Shown here piece by piece: positions 2,223 to 14,706 of a stretch of 64,000 bases of DNA. Positions within the stretch are counted from its first letter, which is position 1; each line of letters opens with the position of its first letter. The stretch lies in NCBI GenBank assembly GCA_038496445.1, contig JALMLS010000017.1, positions 124,001 through 188,000 of the forward strand, written 5' to 3'. This stretch comes from Trichosphaerium sp. ATCC 40318 (taxonomy: Eukaryota; Protista; Tubulinea). Made by a program: the position numbers and the translations under genes. The notes under the pieces were generated by a model, which saw only the letters and a program-made list of their open reading frames with translations, was not told where the DNA came from and ran no database searches.

Positions 2223-5200
2223 ATGGCGTCCAAAGACCGCGATCATTGGATCGCTATACAAAAAAGAGTAAGGATTGTTTTCAGACTGATGACCCGTTCA
2301 GTCGTTATTAAAACCACTTTAAATTGTATTTACGTTAAGAATTAGACGTTTACAGCATGGGTAAACGAGCAAATAAAATCACGAGACGTTCAAATATCGG
2401 ACCTATACGAGGACATTCACAATGGCGTCTATTTGATATTCCTGGCTGAGAGTGTCACTAGTGAGTTTTTGAACCAAAACAAAAAAATGGATCAGATCTT
2501 TATTTAACGCCATTAGAAACTGAGTTTAAGCGTCGGTACTCTAAAAACCCGCGAATGAGGTAAGAAAATAATATACACGTGAAAAAGGAGTCTCCTTTCT
2601 CACTCGTTGTTTGACAAAGAGTGCACAAGATGGAAAATGTTAGTATGGCGTTGTCTTTCCTCAAGCTAGACGGTGTTGTGTTCGTCGCAATTGGACCTGA
2701 AGGTACACATTACCTCGTCTACAGCAGTCACTGCACAGTGCTTAAAATGGCTCACTCGCGCGTAGATATCGTAGACAAGCATGAGAAATTGATATTAGGT
2801 CTAATATGGACTCTTATTGCTAAATATCAGGTATCTTCTGGTGTAGGATCAAAAGATGCTCTGATGGAGTGGATACAAAGTAAAATCCCACAAAAAAATG
2901 TAAAGAATTACACATCAAGGTACACAAAGGTTTTCTTGCATTAACTGATTTGGTAAAATAGTTGGCGTGATGGCACTGCTATATGTGATCTTGTTAATGC
3001 GCTTGAACCAGGAACCATAAAAGATTCAGAAATAAAACACGTGCGTCGAAGATTTTATCATGTGACACAAGTTTGTAATATTTTAAATTAGAATGCTCCA
3101 TTAAAAAATGCTGAACTTGGTATTAATGCTGCTGCATCTTTGGGTATACCAAAGATCTTACAACCAGAAGATATGATCGCAGATGACGCTGTACACCTTT
3201 TTTGTTCAAGCAAAGAACTTGACACTTATGATTATCCGTAGGACGAACTAAGCGTTGTCACTTACTTATCGTACTTTCCACAGTACAAACCTATAGATAT
3301 TGACGCGTCAAAATGCGTTGCGAGCGGTCCTGGATTATTGAATGCAGATGTTTCAAAGCCAAACGATTTCACTGTTACTGCTGTGGATAGGTATTATTCT
3401 CTTTGTTTAGCTTTGGTTACTAATCCAAAATAGCCAAGGGAATAAAGTAGACTGTTCTAGTTCTCCTTTCCATGTTAAAATAAGTGGACCTTCACCAGCC
3501 TCGCACAAGGTAGTACCTACCTCGGGTAAGGGTGACTTCAAAGTCTCTTGGGTACCTAAAAAGGCTGGAGTATACGAGGTACCCTTAAAGTTACTACGTA
3601 TTTCTAAATTGAGTAGCTTGATATATCGCTGAGTGATGGAAAACGCGTCGGCTCTAGTCCTTATTCTGTAGAAGCTGTAGGGAGGTAATTATAGTATTTA
3701 ACTTTAATTCATTTACCAATTTGTTTCAAGTGGTAATGCTTCACCTGGATCCCTACGTGTGAGACACTGGAAAACTTTTCGTGTTCACTACATACCTTTC
3801 AGTGATGGAATGTCATTTGGGGACTTTTGGAGTTCACTTAGCAATAGCCCTAATTTCAAGAATGTGCAATCAGTTCATTTTACTAAAGAGGTGATTACTT
3901 GGTTATCTACTTTATTGTGACTAAATCTATAAGGGTAAACGGATGCGTATAAATGATGACACAAATCTAAAAGCTGCATCCGAATCAGGGGGCATCCTTG
4001 AAGCTTCAGATACCGAAAAGGGTACACTGTAAATACTTCACAGCAAACTCATATTTGTGTAGATTTTGGAATATTTACAGAATCACTACCATCTGGCGAG
4101 CCACGTTATCACGTGATTTTTATGCATGGTCTCGAACCACATCGAAGCACATGGGTTTCTCCAGAGGTACTAACGCAATGAGACATCTAAATGATCAAAA
4201 TAACACTGCATAGGGCGTTTTCTGGTCTGGAAAATGGCTTGGTGCTGATTTGAAGAATAGTCATGTTCTGTCGTTCCGTTACAATGCTTCTGCCTATAGA
4301 ACGTTTTGGTCTCTTTTCTACCAACTGAAATTCGCAATGGTAGAGATACAAAGAATGAACCTAAAGAAGCCAATAGTATTTTGTGGTAAGTGCTTTTTCC
4401 GCAACCTAAAATCAAGTTTAACGTACTGTTAAGTTCATGGCCTTGGAGGAATTCTGCTGAAATGGCTCTTGTACAGTTACCCTAGATTACGTGCTCAAAC
4501 TAGAGGCAAGCCACTTCGGATTTAAAACATTGACTAACATTTGCAAAGGTGTTGTATTCTTTTCTTGTCCATGGAGACAAGTTCAATGGAGGAACTTTTA
4601 TAATATTTATGGTATTGAACTACCTAAATATTTTGGAATGCTAGCCAGATTTGTTAACAATAAGTACAATGGATTCGGCATTCCTTCGCTTTGTTTTGGT
4701 GCTCAATACCAATTAAAGGCACGTGTATTGTCAATGTTACCTTGTTTCTATCTAACTAGTACAGGGTTGTGACGTTGTGCCTCTTGAAGCTTCCGGTAAA
4801 GTTACCCCATGGGGCCTAGTACAATGGCACCCTGTTGCTAGAGATCACAGCACAATTGTGCGGCCAACTCGTGAAGATTTTCTTCCTTATAAACGCACTG
4901 TGCAATGGATCAAAGGGTTGTGTACGTACTTTTTTACATAAAGAAAATGATAACAAGCTAAAGTCACTTAGATGAACCTGGACGTATTAATCCATGGTAC
5001 TCTTGTAAAGGCAAGTATAGGTATTCTCATTGATGATCTAACACGTGGGTTATAGGATCTCCAAAAATCGATTTTGTGTTCGTACCTGGCTTGTGTCGTG
5101 ACGTAAACGGCGTATGGGGTATTAGAGGAAATCCAAGTAAAAGTTGGGCATTGGTACTAGAAGCATACACCAGTATTGATTCTGATTACCTTTTTAGTCG

Positions 5201-8200
5201 TGGATGGTACCAGAGTTTAAACGAAGACTCGGAAGCGATTGTGTGAATGTATGGCGCTACGATTGTGACTGGAAACTACTTGAGAATACAGGTGGTATTC
5301 GTGCCATAGCATCAAAGTACATATACAGTTTGTATTATTGTCTTCATACTAATTCTAGTATCAAGCATTGCCAGCGCTTTTGCAGAGAACGGTATTGCCT
5401 CAAAGAGGCCCGTGGTATTATTAGGTCATGGTATTGGCGGCTTACCTTTGAGGCACTTGTTATTGTCGAGTTGGCCTATCCGCAGAAGAACATCCAGGGC
5501 TGTATTCTTTGGATGTCCTCACCGTGCAGGCGGTATTGATTGGGGCGCTGTACTATCAGGATTTGGGGTTAACCCATCTCCAGATGCAGTAAGAGAACTG
5601 GGAGAGTACACTGCATCACTACAAAACTCCTTTGATAGACTCTCGCTCCCTACTCTCAATTTTATTCCTGCTCAAGCAGAATCTGTACGGATGCAAACCT
5701 CATCATGTCATCTCACGCAATTGTAGTTCCCTGTGGGATGTTTCGTCCCTACACGTCGATTTACTGAAGTAATGAAGATACCAGACAGCGACTATAATAC
5801 AGTAGGTCAATTTCCAAGTGAATCGGATAGAGGATACAAGAAATTAATAGGATTCTTGGGATTGGGTAATATTACTATCTTGTCAATGTGTTATTTATTG
5901 TACTGTTAAGGTCCTTGGAACTACTTATACTCAATACAAACCAGAGATGGTCCTTTTGGCGAATATAATTACTTCCCTTGGCACAAGGTAACACTATTTG
6001 CTGAAACTATAATGGAGATTTTGTCACCAAGTCAACTTACTTTAACTTTAAGGTTTTTGACTTTGAGGGAGTGAAATTTAGATTGTTTCCAGCTCCACGC
6101 GGTTATAGATCATCTGCATTTGGCTTAAGTATTATGGATCCTAATGGATCCGGTCACATTCGTCCAGAAGATCTTGATATTGGTGTTGTGAAAGGAAACG
6201 AAATGGATTGCGAATTTTCTCCTTTACCTGGTTTTTCTGTACCATCTTTCGTTGCTACCTTATATCCTAAATCCTCAGGTACTCCTATAAATGAAACATG
6301 TTGGATAAAGTATTTTACTCATGTTATAAAAGGAGAGTATGACGTGAACCTAAGTTACAAGGGTAAACCACTTTTACCTCAACCAATCAAGATTGTGGCA
6401 TACAGTACGTCTTTAGTTAACAATACAATACAACTAATAAAAATTAGCCATCGATCCAGAGAAATGCACGATGAGTGGAAAAGGTTTAGACTATCCATGT
6501 GCTGGAGAACCTTCAAATGTTACTATTGGTTTGAAAGATTCCAATGGATTAAGTGTTGCTGTCGGTGGTGCTACGATTGACACTGACTACGAATCTCCAC
6601 TTGGGTCATTACCAACGCAAGTTACAGATAAGAAAGATGGAGAATACACTGTTTCTTTCACTCCTGAACATGGATACAATAGCCTGGGTGCTAGTATACA
6701 GAATAGTGAGCTTCCAAGCACACCAAAAAAGATTTTTGCAGAGGTAAATAGACAAACTTGTTTGAGGCTTGACTTAATTTTTTTCAGATGAAATCTAATG
6801 TTCCTGATATGCCACACCGACGGAATGTACCAAATAGGTTTACACTACAAAACGCACAAGGCTATGTGGTACCAGGATTACAACCAAAAGACTTCGATGT
6901 TGAGGTTTATGGTCCTATGAACACACCAAAAGCAACTTCATTCAATGGTTCGTAATGTCCACAGTTACAATAATACTCATAAAACGCAGGTACGGTTGAA
7001 CCATGTCCTGAACTTGAGGGTGTATATCAAGGTACGTAACTGTAAGTTATAGCTATCACGTGATTTTAACACGTGCCAAGCCGATTTCTCACCTCAGTAC
7101 CCTGGTGTTTACAAAGTAGTCCCAAAACACAAAGGACATGCAGTGCTATCGTCTCCACTTTATGCTAACGTTTTCGCACGTACGTCTTTACTACGTTTTC
7201 TCTCTATAAGATGACATTCTTTCGCAGTACCTGTTGCAAGTGGTGATGGAGACGCAACGAGTAATCCTTTGGAATGGCAGAAGGGTGTTATGGGCGCATC
7301 TCCTTCAGGTGATGTTGACCTTACAAAGAAGCCAAATATGAAGCTTTGGAGCAGAGGAGATCCTCTACAGTGCGGACGTGTCAAAATGCCTAAATACATA
7401 TCCTGTTCCTGCTCGGATGGTAGTGGTAATCCTATCTCTGGAAATGTATCTCTAGTATCTCAAGAGCCAACACAATCTGAGGGTACCTAATACTTGAACT
7501 TAGCACTCCTAACTTTGGTATTGTAGTTACTGCTGCGGAAGTCTCCCCTGGGCTTTACACCGTGCCATTTATACCTTGTGCTGAGGGTAGTCATCCATTA
7601 TACGCTACTTTCCAAGGTGTACCAGTTAACAGCGAACCAATAACACTAGCTGCATCAGCACGTGCGTATACAACTTAATCTATGATTGGTAACCACGTAT
7701 TTTAGCATCAGAACCTTCTCTTTGTAGTGCTGTACCAAAACATCAGAACAAAATGCAATGCTTCACATTTACACCTGAAGGCGTGCCACAAAGGTTATAT
7801 CTTAGTTTGTAATTTCTAGAAGTGACCTTGAATAGGTTTGGTGGGGAGAATATAGCTGTTTTAGCTACTGATCCAAGAGGAGATGTTGTACCATGTTCTG
7901 TTGAGGTAACTTTTTGTTCACTTATTACTTTACGTAACAATGTCTAGGATAAAGGGGATGGCACTTATGATGTGACGTTCGAACCTACAAGTGCTGAGCC
8001 GCTTACTGCTGATGTTCTCGTTGGAGGAAAACCTCTTTCTGCACCTGTAGAGATTCAAGCATTCCCTACTTCAGAAGGTTTGTACCCACCAAATGATTCA
8101 AGTTAAGAGCTTTTTCTAAACAATATGATTCTAGGAAGCCCAGAAGTATTTGAGAGAAGCAATAACATACCTGATAGTAGAGAAGCTTGTTATGGATCAA

Positions 8201-11200
8201 ATGTCGGAGCACCTGATGTTCCAGAAACAGAAGAGCCACATGGAGCTTTATTTCCTAGTGATAAGCCAGATAATGATCGCAATATTGGTAAACTAAGACG
8301 TAGAAATCCTAAATCAGGGTCTGGTGCTAAGCCACAAAGAACCGTTGGAAAGTTAAAACCAAGGTACTTCCATACATTGAGTACAAAAAAACTAACTGTC
8401 TTTTTTCCGTAGAAAAGCGAAGGCTGGCGTTGAACCATACCACCCTGGACAATTTGCACTTACTGACCCACAAGGTGTACCTTGTGTTGTTGATCCATCT
8501 GAATTGGTTCCTGTAATATCTGGAGTTGATAATCCAAGAGGTAAAAGTGTTTTATCTATCATTCATAATTGTATTCTTATGCGAAGCAAAGGTGAGGTTT
8601 ACGAAGTTGAACCTGATTCTGGTGTATACGGTGTGAAGTTCCATCCTCGAACTGCAGGGGACTATAATATCCAAGTAGAACGAGCTGGAGAACCTATTTT
8701 GCTTAAACCAATCAAAGCAAAAGTGTCATGCTGTAAGTTTTTTGAATTCTTTGACCATTTCCTAACACGTGTCTTTAGTACCTCGAAAGCTCGGTGGTAA
8801 CTCGAGAAGAGTCAAAGATTCTCCGATAGCTATTGTATGGAGTCGTGGTGACGGATTAAATGCTTGTCCTAGTGATAAAGAATACAAAGTTGGCATAACT
8901 CTTGAGAATCCTATTGAGGATGTACCTGAAAATGATGTTAAAGTATTTTTGTTTGGTTCAGGAACAGACGAAGGTACTTGATAGATTTCTTTCTTACTTT
9001 TCATCCAACAATAAAATTGTGTAAGTTAACACGTGGTCATAGTCGACATGTCAAAGTGTCCAGATGGCTCTTTTGCTGGTAAATTCTCTCCAAAACAACC
9101 AGAAGAAGTTAGTATGGATGTCATGGTTGGTGGAGAGCCATTGTTTAGTGATCCGGAGGAGCTTACTTTTACACCACGTACAAACACTCTAAGCAATAGT
9201 GGCGTTATTAACAGGATTTGTAGCTTTAAGCTCTGATAAGTCAGGACTTAAAGGAAGCATACCTGCAGCTTTCGTTGGATCACCTGTTACACTACAAGTA
9301 GCTGCACGTGATGACGCAGGCAAACCTATTCGAAGAGGTGGACATGATATTGTACCAGTGGTGTCTGTTGGTGGCGCAAGAGTTCCAGTTGAAGTAAAGG
9401 TATGTATTAAGACTTGGAAAGCCATCTTTTAACCTAGCAAATACAGGACAATGGTGATGGCACTTATGATTGCACTTTCACGCCTACACGACCTGGTACA
9501 TGTTCTGCTAATGTTGTAAGCAATGGAAAACCACTTAAAGGATTCCCAACGGAGATTCCAGTTACAGGAGAACCAAGCGACTATGCATCAACAGGTATAC
9601 ATTTTTGATTTCTTGGAGCGATTAGATTGTTGACTCATGTTTGTTTAGAGCCTGTCGTGTTCGAAAAGGCAGATGCTCCTTTGGGGAAAACAACAGCACC
9701 TCCTAAAAGGTCTAAGGCAAGAATCATTGCTGACGGTCCAGGAAAACTTCACCCAGGTCAATTCGTCCTGCAAGATGCTGATGGAAATCCACTATCTTTA
9801 CCGAGTTCCATGTTTGATGTAGATGTAAATGGTCCGGGCACTCCTGAAGCTACAGTAAAAGAAACTGAGCCTGGAAGTGGAGTATACAATGTTAACTTTA
9901 ATCCTGACAAACCTGGAGAGTATCTGATAAAGGTTAAAGATAAGGGAGGTAATCCTATACTACCTCAACCAATACTTGTCAATACAGAGCCAAGTACGTC
10001 AATCACTTGCTCAATTTTTCTGCTGTATTTCATTATGTGTGTTAACGGTTTCACTCCCAAGTTGATTCTCCTGAGACGTTCTCTATTAAACCTAAGCTAT
10101 TCACTTGGCGCAAAGGAAGCGATGATCCTTCAGGTCACTTAAATACACCTACAGATGTTGGATTATCTGTACAAGACCCTGTAACAGGAGAAATGATACC
10201 TTGTGATACAATACCTCGTTTAGAAGTTAGAGATGCTGAAGAACCAGGTATCAATCGTTGGATTGTTTTTTTACTTTATCTTATTGGTTCTTTTTTAAGT
10301 CACTGTTTACAACAATCCCGATGGCTCTCGTACTGTATCATTTACACCTCAAACTGAAGCACCACATAATTTATCATTTGAAGATGACAACGGCAAATCA
10401 CCACGTGCACCTCTAAAAATACCAGTTCTTAAAGGTGATAATGAGTGACTTACTGTTCAGCAGAAATATCTTACTAGTATTTAGAAACTGCTCCATCTCA
10501 ATGCGCCGTATCTGGTCCTGGAGTATCTGACGCTAAAGTCGGATCTCCAAACACATTTAAGGTCGTTGCTAAAGACAACAATGGCAATCCGCAAACAGGT
10601 GGTTGTGATCCACTTTCTGTAGCTGTAGTTGATGAAGACGGTAATCTTGTACCAGTATCTATTGATGTACGACGTATTAATTACTCTCCCGTACATGACT
10701 TCAACGTAGGATAATGGTGACGGAACCTACGATGTTTCTTACGTACCTCAAATACCAGGGAATGTGGCTATTCATGCTGGAATCGGTGACAAACCAATAA
10801 GAGGATTCCCTAAAACAGTAAAAGCAGATGGAACACCTGGTGCGTTAGTTGCTGCACCGTATAGTTACTCACATTATTTTTAGTGAGTGGGTCGAAGCCT
10901 ATTGTATCTAGACCAATAGGAAAGCTTACATTGGATCAAATGGCTCCTTTCAGAGCAACTCCAAAAGACAACCCATCAGCTAAAAAGAAGTCCAAGCCAA
11001 AAAATGTCAAAAAACCTGTAGAGTATTCTTCAAAACCAAAACCTCGGCCAAGTGGCGGGTTCAGTACAGGCCCTCAGAGCTCAGGATATGGTAATCCAGA
11101 ACCAAGAAGACGATCTCGTCGTGGTTCCGTATCAGCAGCTTACAAAGATGCGCAACCTCTTAAAAAACAACCTCCAAAGCCAGTTGGTCGTATACTGACA

Positions 11201-14200
11201 ACAAAACCAGATGGTACTTGAAAAAAATACCTCAGTGGTTTTTTTGACTGCTACTAGCTGCCCATCCAGGACAATTCGTTCTTAGAGATAACAAGGGTAA
11301 TCCGTTGACAGATGTACCTTCTGACGCACTAGATGTTCGTATTGCTGGACCAGATGCACCTGAAGGGCGAGTTGAAGAAGTTTCTCCTGGAGTATATGGT
11401 GTTAAGTTCAATCCTGAGGAACCTGGTGAATACACAGTAGATATCAATAAGGATGGTAAACCAATACTGAGTTGTCCAATACTTGCTTCTGTTCGTGTTG
11501 GTACGTATTTAAAGCTCAAAGTTTATTTTCTTTAAATATTCTCATTATTTCGCTTAGCACCAGCTGCACTTGGAGGAAAACCACATGACCCAAAGTCTTC
11601 ACCAAAAGTCTTTGTATGGCGTAGGGGAGATCCACACGCTGAAAACCCAGCTCAGATAGGCGTAAGTCTCGAGGATCCAAAGAGAGGAACTATGCCAGTA
11701 AACAACTTGGCCGCGAACATCCAGCCGAAATTCGCACAAGAAACGCCAAGAGGTACGTTATTAGTTTCTCCATTTGAGGCCCAGTGCTAATCGTTCGTTT
11801 AGCGAATGTTAAAAAGAACGATGATGGCTCTCATTGCATGTCTTTCATTCCTAAAGATGTAGAACCACATGATCTTAATATAATGTGTAATGGTGTACCT
11901 CTTTCAGATCCTGTTGAGATTAAAGTAGTTCCAGGTAAACAAAAAAAATCAGTCAAAAGACTTCTGGAGTTTTTTAGTCTAACATCATTACTTTATAGAG
12001 TCTGATCCTACAAAGTCTTCAGTGGCTGGTCCAGGACTCAATTCTGCTACTACTGGTGTTCCAAATAAGTTTGAGATTAAGACCAAGGATAGCGATGGTT
12101 GGCCACAGATGACAGGAGGTGATCCTCTTTCTGTTAGTGTTAAAACACCAAGTGGGAAATCTCTTCCAGTTTCAGTTCGTGATAATGATGATGGAACATA
12201 CAGTGTTGAATATACACCAACTGAACCTGGTCCTCACGAGATCCAAGCTAAACTAAAAGATAAGGCACTTCCTGGCACACCAGCAACTGTTCATGTCAAT
12301 GGTATGCCAGTAGATAAACCGAACACTGCTCGTATCTCTGAAGAACCATCCAACTTTTCGAAAATGGTAAAACCAAGCAACAACCAAACATCAAGCTATG
12401 GTACTCCACAATCGTCATATGGATCACCTAAGACGAGAGAAGTATCGAATCCAGAGCCAAAAACTTCATCAAAACCTTCTGGACGGTCAATTGGATCTGT
12501 TCTACCTGCGTTAGGATCCAGTATCAAACCCAAGGCTTCCAAGTCTGGCTTCAAAATGCCTGATCCTGTACGTTACGCCAACTTCTTCGATTTTATAGAT
12601 CCTAACATTTTACTCACAGAGCAATCCTCCTAAAGAAGGTGAGATGATAAATATGTTGGCTGACGCCATGGATATCTTAAAGAAGAAGCCAAACACCTCC
12701 GACAAGGCGGAATGTGATGTACGGTTTTTTCTTAAAACAAACAGCCAAGATTTCAATGAGAATAGTGTTAACAATGTTTGATAAGGATATTAATGAGATG
12801 ATGGATAAAGTAAAGGACCTCGCTGAGAATGTATCCAAGTTGACTTCAGTACCATTTAAAGATATCGTACAACTTGATGAAGATGGTCTTCGCAAGTTTA
12901 TCGCAAACCTAATCCTTGCAATCGTATGTAACGACCTTCTTAATTTTTTCTCGATGTCTCAATCTAAATACACTTCTAGATTTTGTTTTTGGAACTCGTT
13001 AAAGACAACATGCCGTTTATCATGGATGACAATATTCGTATAGAGATACGAAATGAGTGTCAGACATTAGTTGGGAAATGTATCTTACTATTGAAGCTCT
13101 TTATGAAACTGAGGTAAAACAGAACTTTCTCAATGCAGTTTAGACTAAAATGAGGTTCTAACACTTCACATAGCCCACTAAGTCCAACTGAGCGTCTGAA
13201 GCATGCAGACGAATTCGATAAAATCCTAATGGGTAACTTTAAAAAAACGTTTTTAGTGTCATCCCTTTGTACTTACTTCAATTAGGTATCAACTACAGTA
13301 TCGTTGTTATTTGTGAGATGATGCAAACATACATTGTGAAACTTATATACTTGTACAAACTCGTTCCAGGATTCAATGCAAATGGAGATCCATACGAACT
13401 TGTTCGTATACTGATACAAAAGATGAAGTCCCAAATGCAATCAAAATCATCCAAAGAGCAGCTAAAGAAATTCTGTGATCCACATCCTCACCCTGTGGAC
13501 TACCAAATAGGTACATAAACCCAACCTCTACGTCCATAAATCTCACGTGAGTTTTTTTTAAATTATAGCTGTTGATACACTTGTCTTTTTGATGAAGAAA
13601 GTCATTATGGTTATTCAAAAACCTGGTAATTTCGACTACATAACATTCCTCAGTGAGTTGGCAGTGTTCTTTAGATACATCAAGGTAGTACTATACACTT
13701 TATTTGTTACAGAAGAGAAGCGAAAGGTTTGTAACTTGTGGTTCCTTTTCATACAAAAGCTAACAGTATTTCATCTTCAGGAGCCTCTAGATATTGCACT
13801 AAGAGCAGTTGATGCTGGTGGAAGCTATGTTCTACATCTTATCCGCAACAACTCAAGTAGTGCACAAAAATCAATCCGACAATTTGCTTCGTACATCCAA
13901 CAGCTTAATAAATTTCTTGGAGAACTCAATGTATCCAAGAGCAAATTATATCTTCAAGGTAACACCACACGTGACCAACCTTCCAATAATTATTAACATT
14001 CACTTATAGCACCACCTTCCATGCGTCTTGGTTCAAGTACATTGATAAGCGTAACAAGTAAAGACTTAGAAGGAAAACCAGTACCTCTTGACATTTCACT
14101 GCTAAAGTGTCGCATCACAGATCCATCGTATGTTTTTCTGGTTTCCTCCTTTCAACGCTTAAGTTATTTTTAGAGGGAATACAGATGTTGTAAAAGCCAA

Positions 14201-14706
14201 AGACGTTGGCAACTCAAAATACAGTTTTGATTTTAATCCAAAGACACATGGTACTTATACTTATAATGTATTCATGCACGATAAGCCAGTGTACAAAGAT
14301 ATCAAACTGAACGTTGGTTTACGTACGTCCAAAATCCACAAACTAAAGTCTGACTCTTTTCTTAGCACCATGTGCCAAGTTTTGCACAGCAACGTACCCT
14401 TCCTCAGTGAGCGTTGGTGGTCTTGTAGAGATAGTTATCCAAGCCAAAGATAAAGACGATAACATCATTAAGAGTGGAGGTGATCCATTCAAGGTACAAA
14501 GAAAAAATAGACTAATCTTCTTCGTGCTGACATTGTTTCAAAAGGTTTCGGGTCGTGGCGCTTTTGAGAACTTGAGGCAACGTGACAACTCCAATGGCAC
14601 TTATACTATAAAGTTTACAGCTCCACAAGCTGGTACATACGAAGTATATATCAAAAAAGACGGAGAAGAAGTAAAAGGATCTCCAGCTATCATTACAGCG
14701 TCATAA
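2223..14706 (+). CDS. Giant filamin/gelation-factor-like protein: 2 CH domains, many filamin Ig repeats, two SERAC1-like alpha/beta-hydrolase domains, helical insert
   Basis: N-terminus MASKDRDHWIAIQKK-TFTAWVNEQI, DIVDKHEKLILGLIWTLI, WRDGTAICDLVNAL, DELSVVTYLSYF (actin-binding CH pair); repeated SGPGL...GGD...D(N/K)GDGTYxVxFTP filamin motifs through the final exon (...KGSPAIITAS*). No internal terminal stop or new ATG seen at exon junctions I checked, but the single-gene interpretation is unconfirmed. Confidence 0.8.

Follow-up and report, generated by a model that had tools for sequence, protein, structure and literature searches.

Filamins are textbook mechanical linkers, and their rods are thought to consist of immunoglobulin (Ig) repeats only. 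The SERAC1/sesB-like domain, a member of the alpha/beta-hydrolase fold, is known mainly from conflict systems and from mitochondrial lipid remodelling. Pseudoenzymes that serve in binding occur elsewhere in the same fold, such as neuroligins, where Gly stands for the active-site Ser, and ABHD5/CGI-58, where Asn stands for Ser. The gene described here lies on the forward strand of a 64,000-nucleotide stretch of the genome of Trichosphaerium sp. ATCC 40318 (GenBank assembly GCA_038496445.1, contig JALMLS010000017.1, positions 124,001 to 188,000); this stretch is referred to below as the window, and all coordinates are counted from its first letter unless another contig is named. Like filamins and the ABP-120 gelation factor, the gene encodes two CH domains at the N terminus and, behind them, filamin/ABP280 repeats (scoring up to 89 bits with Pfam Filamin); unlike them, it carries a PB1-like domain and two hydrolase-fold domains, designated H1 and H2, between repeats 1 and 2. 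An earlier note, made from the letters of this DNA alone, had proposed a filamin-like protein with two SERAC1-like domains, both lacking the nucleophilic Ser. The analysis reported below confirms a single expressed filamin-type gene, in which two pseudoenzyme domains most likely serve as non-catalytic binding modules beside the actin-binding head.

H1 (4063 to 4921; exons 4063-4166, 4214-4385, 4434-4505, 4549-4718 and 4765-4921) and H2 (5056 to 5865; exons 5056-5153, 5198-5316, 5366-5684 and 5727-5865) were delimited with a local profile and RNA data, supplemented for H2 by an exon search. The profile was built from 122 canonical SERAC1/DUF676/sesB-like domains and was run against the joined window model. 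H1 matched it over its full length (profile positions 2-228; 67.3 bits, E 7.5e-23), and H2 over the first 125 positions only (32.3 bits, E 3.7e-12). These matches are far beyond chance and assign both domains, by profile, to the alpha/beta-hydrolase fold of the SERAC1/DUF676 type, with which they have the motifs FVHGLGG, TW, FWP, GG-L-K and TPH in common. Single hydrolase exons remained below the Pfam threshold (Abhydrolase_6 E 0.027, Abhydro_lipase E 0.15), as they are too short. When the longest of them (5367-5684, 106 residues) was searched against 1.84 billion representative proteins, it retrieved a few fragments and, at E 1.1e-22, the nearest relative, the protein P0001, which has 715 residues and three tandem copies of the domain. 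A further candidate from this search, P0002, was dropped as a low-complexity repeat match.

P0001 exceeds the Pfam cut-offs for Abhydrolase_6 (57.6, cut-off 26.3), Abhydrolase_1 and DUF676 (29.2, cut-off 20.3). It is related to domains that stand at the N terminus of NB-ARC/NACHT/TPR, TIR, AAA-like and 'ABC-three component' proteins from bacteria and fungi, several of which are labelled 'protein SERAC1' by their source. This homologous-protein search spanned only 393 to 1251 residues, so that longer annotated fusions could escape it; the exon search had no length limit. By sequence, the domain of P0001 is identified as the sesB-like lipase domain of fungal NLRs, which is also found in human SERAC1 (Dyrka et al. 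2014, PMC4986451). An AF2 model of P0001 copy 2, the copy with the elbow HGLGG, was obtained with a pLDDT of 91.9 and a pTM of 0.91; in a Foldseek search it matched at least 500 alpha/beta hydrolases of the PDB, with monoacylglycerol lipases at the top (probability 1.0, TM 0.56-0.62). Sequence searches of the PDB gave nothing significant except a weak profile match to the esterase BlEst2 (6wpx, E 5.7e-4). The hydrolase fold that the earlier note had wished to see checked by profile searches is thus supported both by the 122-domain profile and by the Pfam scores of P0001. Its picture of one filamin-type gene with two such domains embedded in it is supported as well.

The window is eukaryotic in character, with a G+C content of about 39% and introns of 38-65 bases. 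Expression and splicing were followed in RNA contigs from two public runs, X1 and X2; these are 95-99% identical to the window and are therefore taken to stem from a related strain or allele. The spliced model from 2346 to 6687 forms a single open frame of 1062 codons, with 25 exons and 24 introns. A 1857-base X1 contig begins in the CH exons at 2346, crosses filamin repeat 1 and the linker and reaches H1, spanning fourteen GT..AG or GC..AG joints, among them 4386-4433 and 4506-4548. The first of these two introns, 48 bases long, directly precedes the HGLGG codons and its joint is visible in the RNA; the second is of the GC..AG type and was placed by shifting the RNA joint 4503>4547 by 2. Once the RNA joints are applied, the frame from 2346 to 4718 is open. 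Further downstream, a 1328-base X1 contig joins the H2 exon 5366-5684 to the Ig repeats that follow (6050-6276 and 6448-6687). The remaining introns were set by the lengths of the RNA contig pieces, the depth per bin and the sole open frame. Two GC..AG introns (4719-4764 and 5011-5055) were inferred from the piece lengths and the open frame, and the depth per bin favours intron 5154-5197 over two alternatives. Two dynamic-programming gene finders proved unreliable, the better one recovering 14 of 24 RNA-supported introns; RNA joints, contig-piece lengths and depth were used instead. The start codon, an ATG at 2223, opens an exon of 15 codons with the donor GTAAGG at 2268, as read from the sequence. 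No RNA contig departs from the window sequence within either elbow. The CH, filamin and hydrolase exons are therefore spliced as the earlier note had assumed, with GT..AG joints in the RNA contigs and a single open frame. Intron signals within 2346-6687 are unusual: the donors are mostly GTAC.. (GTACAC, GTACTA, GTACGT), the acceptors are TAG (14), AAG (9) and CAG (1), and 3 of the 24 introns are GC..AG.

The actin-binding head, with its two CH domains, occupies exons 1-8 (2223 to 3290) and was delimited by Pfam searches with single exons and by RNA joints. Exon 2346-2459 matched Pfam CH with an E of 1.3e-5 and, as an exon fragment only, 25.8 bits against a cut-off of 26; exon 2768-2917 matched with an E of 0.007. 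In the spliced frame both CH domains are legible, as in the heads of the filamin family. Filamin repeat 1 (3296 to 3684) was found with Pfam Filamin (exon 3242-3388, E 2e-5; exon 3435-3578, E 0.022) and with a local filamin profile (E 7.8e-19). Beyond the insert lies the rod, which extends from 6053 to 12291 and holds at least 14 filamin-type repeats by the local profile; its exon structure was resolved to 6687. These repeats end at about 6394, 6734, 7160, 7645, 8055, 8716, 9161, 9557, 9980, 10421, 10820, 11484, 11921 and 12291. With the one repeat before the insert, at least 15 are present overall, and three single exons exceed the Pfam Filamin cut-off of 26.9 bits (46.3, 31.7 and 89.3 bits). 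Past the last clear repeat and a Ser/Pro-rich stretch, coding-looking frames continue on the same strand from 12600 to 14700; they look helical between 12680 and 13990 and include two or three more filamin repeats at 14175-14694, and they belong either to the same gene or to the next one.

The same arrangement was found in two other loci. P0001 lies on a 7.8-kb ENA contig (L001), which carries, on one strand, CH exons, filamin repeats, the three domain copies in one exon and again filamin repeats. A 3.9-kb JGI contig (L003), which holds the fragment P0003, encodes a filamin repeat followed by the same linker, a pair of hydrolase-fold domains and then filamin repeats; at 45% identity over the elbow exon it represents a distinct species. 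The window is colinear with both contigs from the linker across the domains to the first Ig repeat downstream. Judged by this colinearity, the combination of filamin and hydrolase fold is shared with two environmental eukaryotic contigs, so it is not unique to this genome. Two metagenome scans revealed no further filamin fusion: the first was empty, and the second gave 20 loci, all with the elbow HS(L/M)GG and without a filamin repeat. In the literature, no paper was found on a filamin with a SERAC1/DUF676 fusion, in agreement with the earlier note, which knew of none, nor was one found on SERAC1 as a pseudoenzyme.

It is scarcely credible, in the light of these loci, that the fusion is an artefact of the gene model and that the hydrolase exons form a separate gene nested between two filamin-like genes. 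Such a gene would fit the fact that no listed RNA contig bridges the H1-H2 junction, from 4921 to 4972, and contigs cannot prove a single transcript; against it, one contig connects H1 with the linker, filamin repeat 1 and the CH exons upstream, another connects H2 with the Ig repeats downstream, there is no stop or start signal between H1 and H2, the filamin exons around P0001 enclose a single open frame with all three copies, and the layout of L003 is colinear. The H1-H2 junction was accepted because only one frame stays open across it, because the lengths and depth of the contig pieces agree with it, and because the copies in P0001 stand in tandem in one frame.

Within the same genome, a search with P0001 alone recovered only exon 5397-5600 of this gene; a profile search additionally found H1 (exon-level E 0.003) and a canonical paralogue at around 537.6-538.7 kb of G000:C11 (L005 1157-2270). 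The paralogue has the elbow CHSYGG and an intact Glu and His, is preceded by ARM/HEAT-like repeats (recognised by eye), and looks like a SERAC1-like gene. The setting of H1 and H2 is different from that of their relatives, which are parts of STAND NTPases or ARM-repeat proteins, whereas the window copies are part of a cytoskeletal rod.

The linker between filamin repeat 1 and H1 (3731 to 4021; exons 3731-3890 and 3934-4021) was delimited by its colinearity with the linkers of L001 and L003. It comprises about 85 residues and is conserved in all three loci. An AF2 model of its L001 counterpart (pLDDT 81.9) has the order beta-beta-alpha-beta-beta-alpha-beta, and its top PDB matches are PB1 domains (p40phox/p67phox, Bem1p and NBR1), although these are weak (E 6e-3, TM 0.52-0.56). 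Pfam PB1 was matched below its cut-off (E 0.011), on one exon of L003 only (L003:290-424). The linker is therefore described as PB1-like on the basis of the model, and membership of PB1 is not claimed.

Examination of the catalytic positions indicated that both hydrolase-fold domains have lost more than the nucleophile. In the canonical family, 121 of 122 copies have the elbow Ser, all 122 have the YYET Glu and 121 have the His; the 'VVD' motif varies more, its Asp occurring in 94 of 122, and all filamin-embedded copies that align there have Pro in place of this Asp. In the model of P0001 copy 2, strand 151-155 is directly followed by the invariant Glu and strand 181-183 by the His, which are the usual sites of the acid and the base. 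The H1 elbow, HGLGG (4436 to 4450; cat ggc ctt gga gga), and the H2 elbow, HGIGG (5427 to 5441; cat ggt att ggc ggc), both have Gly for Ser. H1 has Ala for Glu, and it keeps the oxyanion HG and the His, the latter in the motif RDHSTIVRP (family DH-x-x-I-x-KP). H2 has no aligned Glu, Pro for the oxyanion His and, in the sequence SDYNTV at the place of the His motif, apparently Tyr for His; its C-terminal half was aligned only by eye and against L003. The core fold motifs are retained, and H1 also retains most family-invariant positions. Because Ser and Glu are missing from both domains, and the oxyanion His and apparently His from H2, H1 and H2 are judged from their sequences to be catalytically dead pseudoenzymes. 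The peptides and both elbow coordinates quoted in the earlier note were exact, and the loss of Ser to Gly in both domains that it described was confirmed; the loss is wider than it had stated, H1 also lacking Glu, and H2 Glu, the oxyanion His and apparently His.

Among the relatives, copy 1 of L001 has an intact triad of Ser, Glu and His. Copies 2 and 3 have Gly, Glu and His, the His of copy 3 having been read by eye in the next open reading frame, which starts at 6059. In L003 the elbow of the first domain is CHGIGG and that of the second GFEVGG. The replacement of Ser by Gly, whose conservation in orthologues the earlier note had proposed to check, thus recurs in L001 copies 2 and 3 and in the first domain of L003, and is absent from L001 copy 1. 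As copy 1 keeps all three residues, the ancestral cassette was probably active, and the comparison suggests that it was an actin-tethered lipase. Outside filamins, the protein P0005 (L004 2066-6791, on a JGI contig) is encoded by an NLR-type gene with NPHP3_N/NACHT-like, WHD and ankyrin-repeat regions, and its N-terminal sesB-like domain has the elbow HGIGG; Ser-to-Gly pseudo-lipase heads therefore occur in an NLR context too.

An active ancestor, together with the HG motif, the His motif and the majority of family-invariant positions kept by H1, could be taken to mean that H1 and H2 still catalyse or process by a non-canonical route, for example with the His and oxyanion HG of H1 acting on a substrate-borne or water nucleophile. 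We regard this as very unlikely: Gly is no nucleophile, the Glu of H1 has become Ala, and H2 appears devoid of every catalytic residue. To our knowledge, no case of such catalysis exists in the SERAC1/DUF676/sesB-like family.

The constraint acting on the gene was estimated by comparing the window with the related strain's RNA. Of 26 exonic differences, 23 are synonymous and 3 replacement; the compared exons contain 474 synonymous and 1617 replacement sites, which gives a ratio of about 0.04; the third-position pattern of these differences also supports the inferred reading frames. H1 and H2 together account for 16 of the synonymous and for 3 replacement differences, and this excess shows purifying selection on the two dead domains. 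A tree was built from the five copies of the window and L001 together with 40 canonical domains. The five copies formed one clade with a support of 99/98. The grouping of H1 with H2 was weak (80/43) and may reflect long-branch attraction; the tree is compatible with one or two origins of the Ser-to-Gly change and with more than one order of duplication.

The retained fold motifs and the strong avoidance of replacement changes together make non-catalytic binding modules the most likely role of H1 and H2. In such a protein, the PB1-like domain, H1 and H2 would act as one cassette between the first and second Ig repeats of an actin cross-linker: H1 and H2, positioned beside the actin-binding head, would bind either a protein partner or a lipid-like ligand, and the PB1-like domain may supply a docking or oligomerisation surface. 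As in neuroligins and ABHD5/CGI-58, the nucleophile is lost (in neuroligins also to Gly), the fold is conserved and the sequence is constrained. The window domains differ from these proteins in belonging to another branch of the fold, in being intracellular and in standing in tandem inside an actin cross-linker, and binding in their case would follow by analogy. The lipid or membrane sensing suggested by the earlier note is one of several putative non-catalytic roles, the candidate ligands being lipids, membrane proteins and other proteins of the cytoskeleton.

Several points weigh against binding modules. The H1-H2 junction is spanned by no listed RNA contig, and the strain comparison rests on only 26 differences. 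The structure model is that of a relative, P0001 copy 2. Finally, the branches of the window copies are very long (3.46 and 2.49, compared with 0.44-1.25), which fits past relaxed constraint. Long branches would also be expected if H1 and H2 were the decaying remains of an ancestral lipase tethered to actin, of the type of L001 copy 1, and now only a folded spacer without binding. Consistent with such decay, catalytic residues seem to have been lost stepwise, two of three in H1 and all three plus the oxyanion His in H2, and only the first 125 positions of the family profile are matched by H2. Nevertheless, we hold this explanation to be unlikely, as replacement changes are avoided within the domains (16 synonymous to 3), the core fold motifs are retained, and L003, a distinct species, has the same arrangement of two domains and the same Gly elbow in the first of them.

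A filamin rod that includes expressed and conserved enzyme-fold domains devoid of catalysis is a natural example of how an enzyme fold becomes part of a scaffold, and it shows that the cytoskeleton has recruited the SERAC1/sesB-like domain. Across the three species the copies range from an intact triad to complete loss, a gradation that could show the course of such a conversion. Should the domains bind a lipid or a membrane protein, they would constitute a direct actin-to-membrane coupling device of a new build. A more far-reaching scenario, which we put forward tentatively and think somewhat doubtful, is that, in an amoeboid protist lineage, an actin cross-linker acquired a PB1-like domain and a SERAC1/NLR-effector lipase domain, giving rise to a cortex-tethered lipase whose triad is still complete in one species, and that in the lineage of the present genome this became a pseudoenzyme pair reporting or binding a membrane lipid or a partner protein at the actin-binding head. 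If true, actin cross-linking would be coupled to the condition of the membrane.

Some minor observations were made in the same region. A low-depth X2 contig runs unspliced through intron 4022-4062 with six differences, and represents either unspliced RNA or contaminating DNA of a related strain. At the AT-rich positions 3692 and 4610, a very deep contig present in both RNA runs (depth about 146 in X2) matches some 18 bases each and is unrelated beyond them; an abundant AT-rich transcript that matches by chance is the probable explanation. Just upstream of the filamin-type gene, on the same strand (1074 to 1968), lies a spliced gene for a cyclophilin-type peptidyl-prolyl isomerase, in which the motifs FHRIIP, GGDFT and NGSQFFI were recognised by eye.

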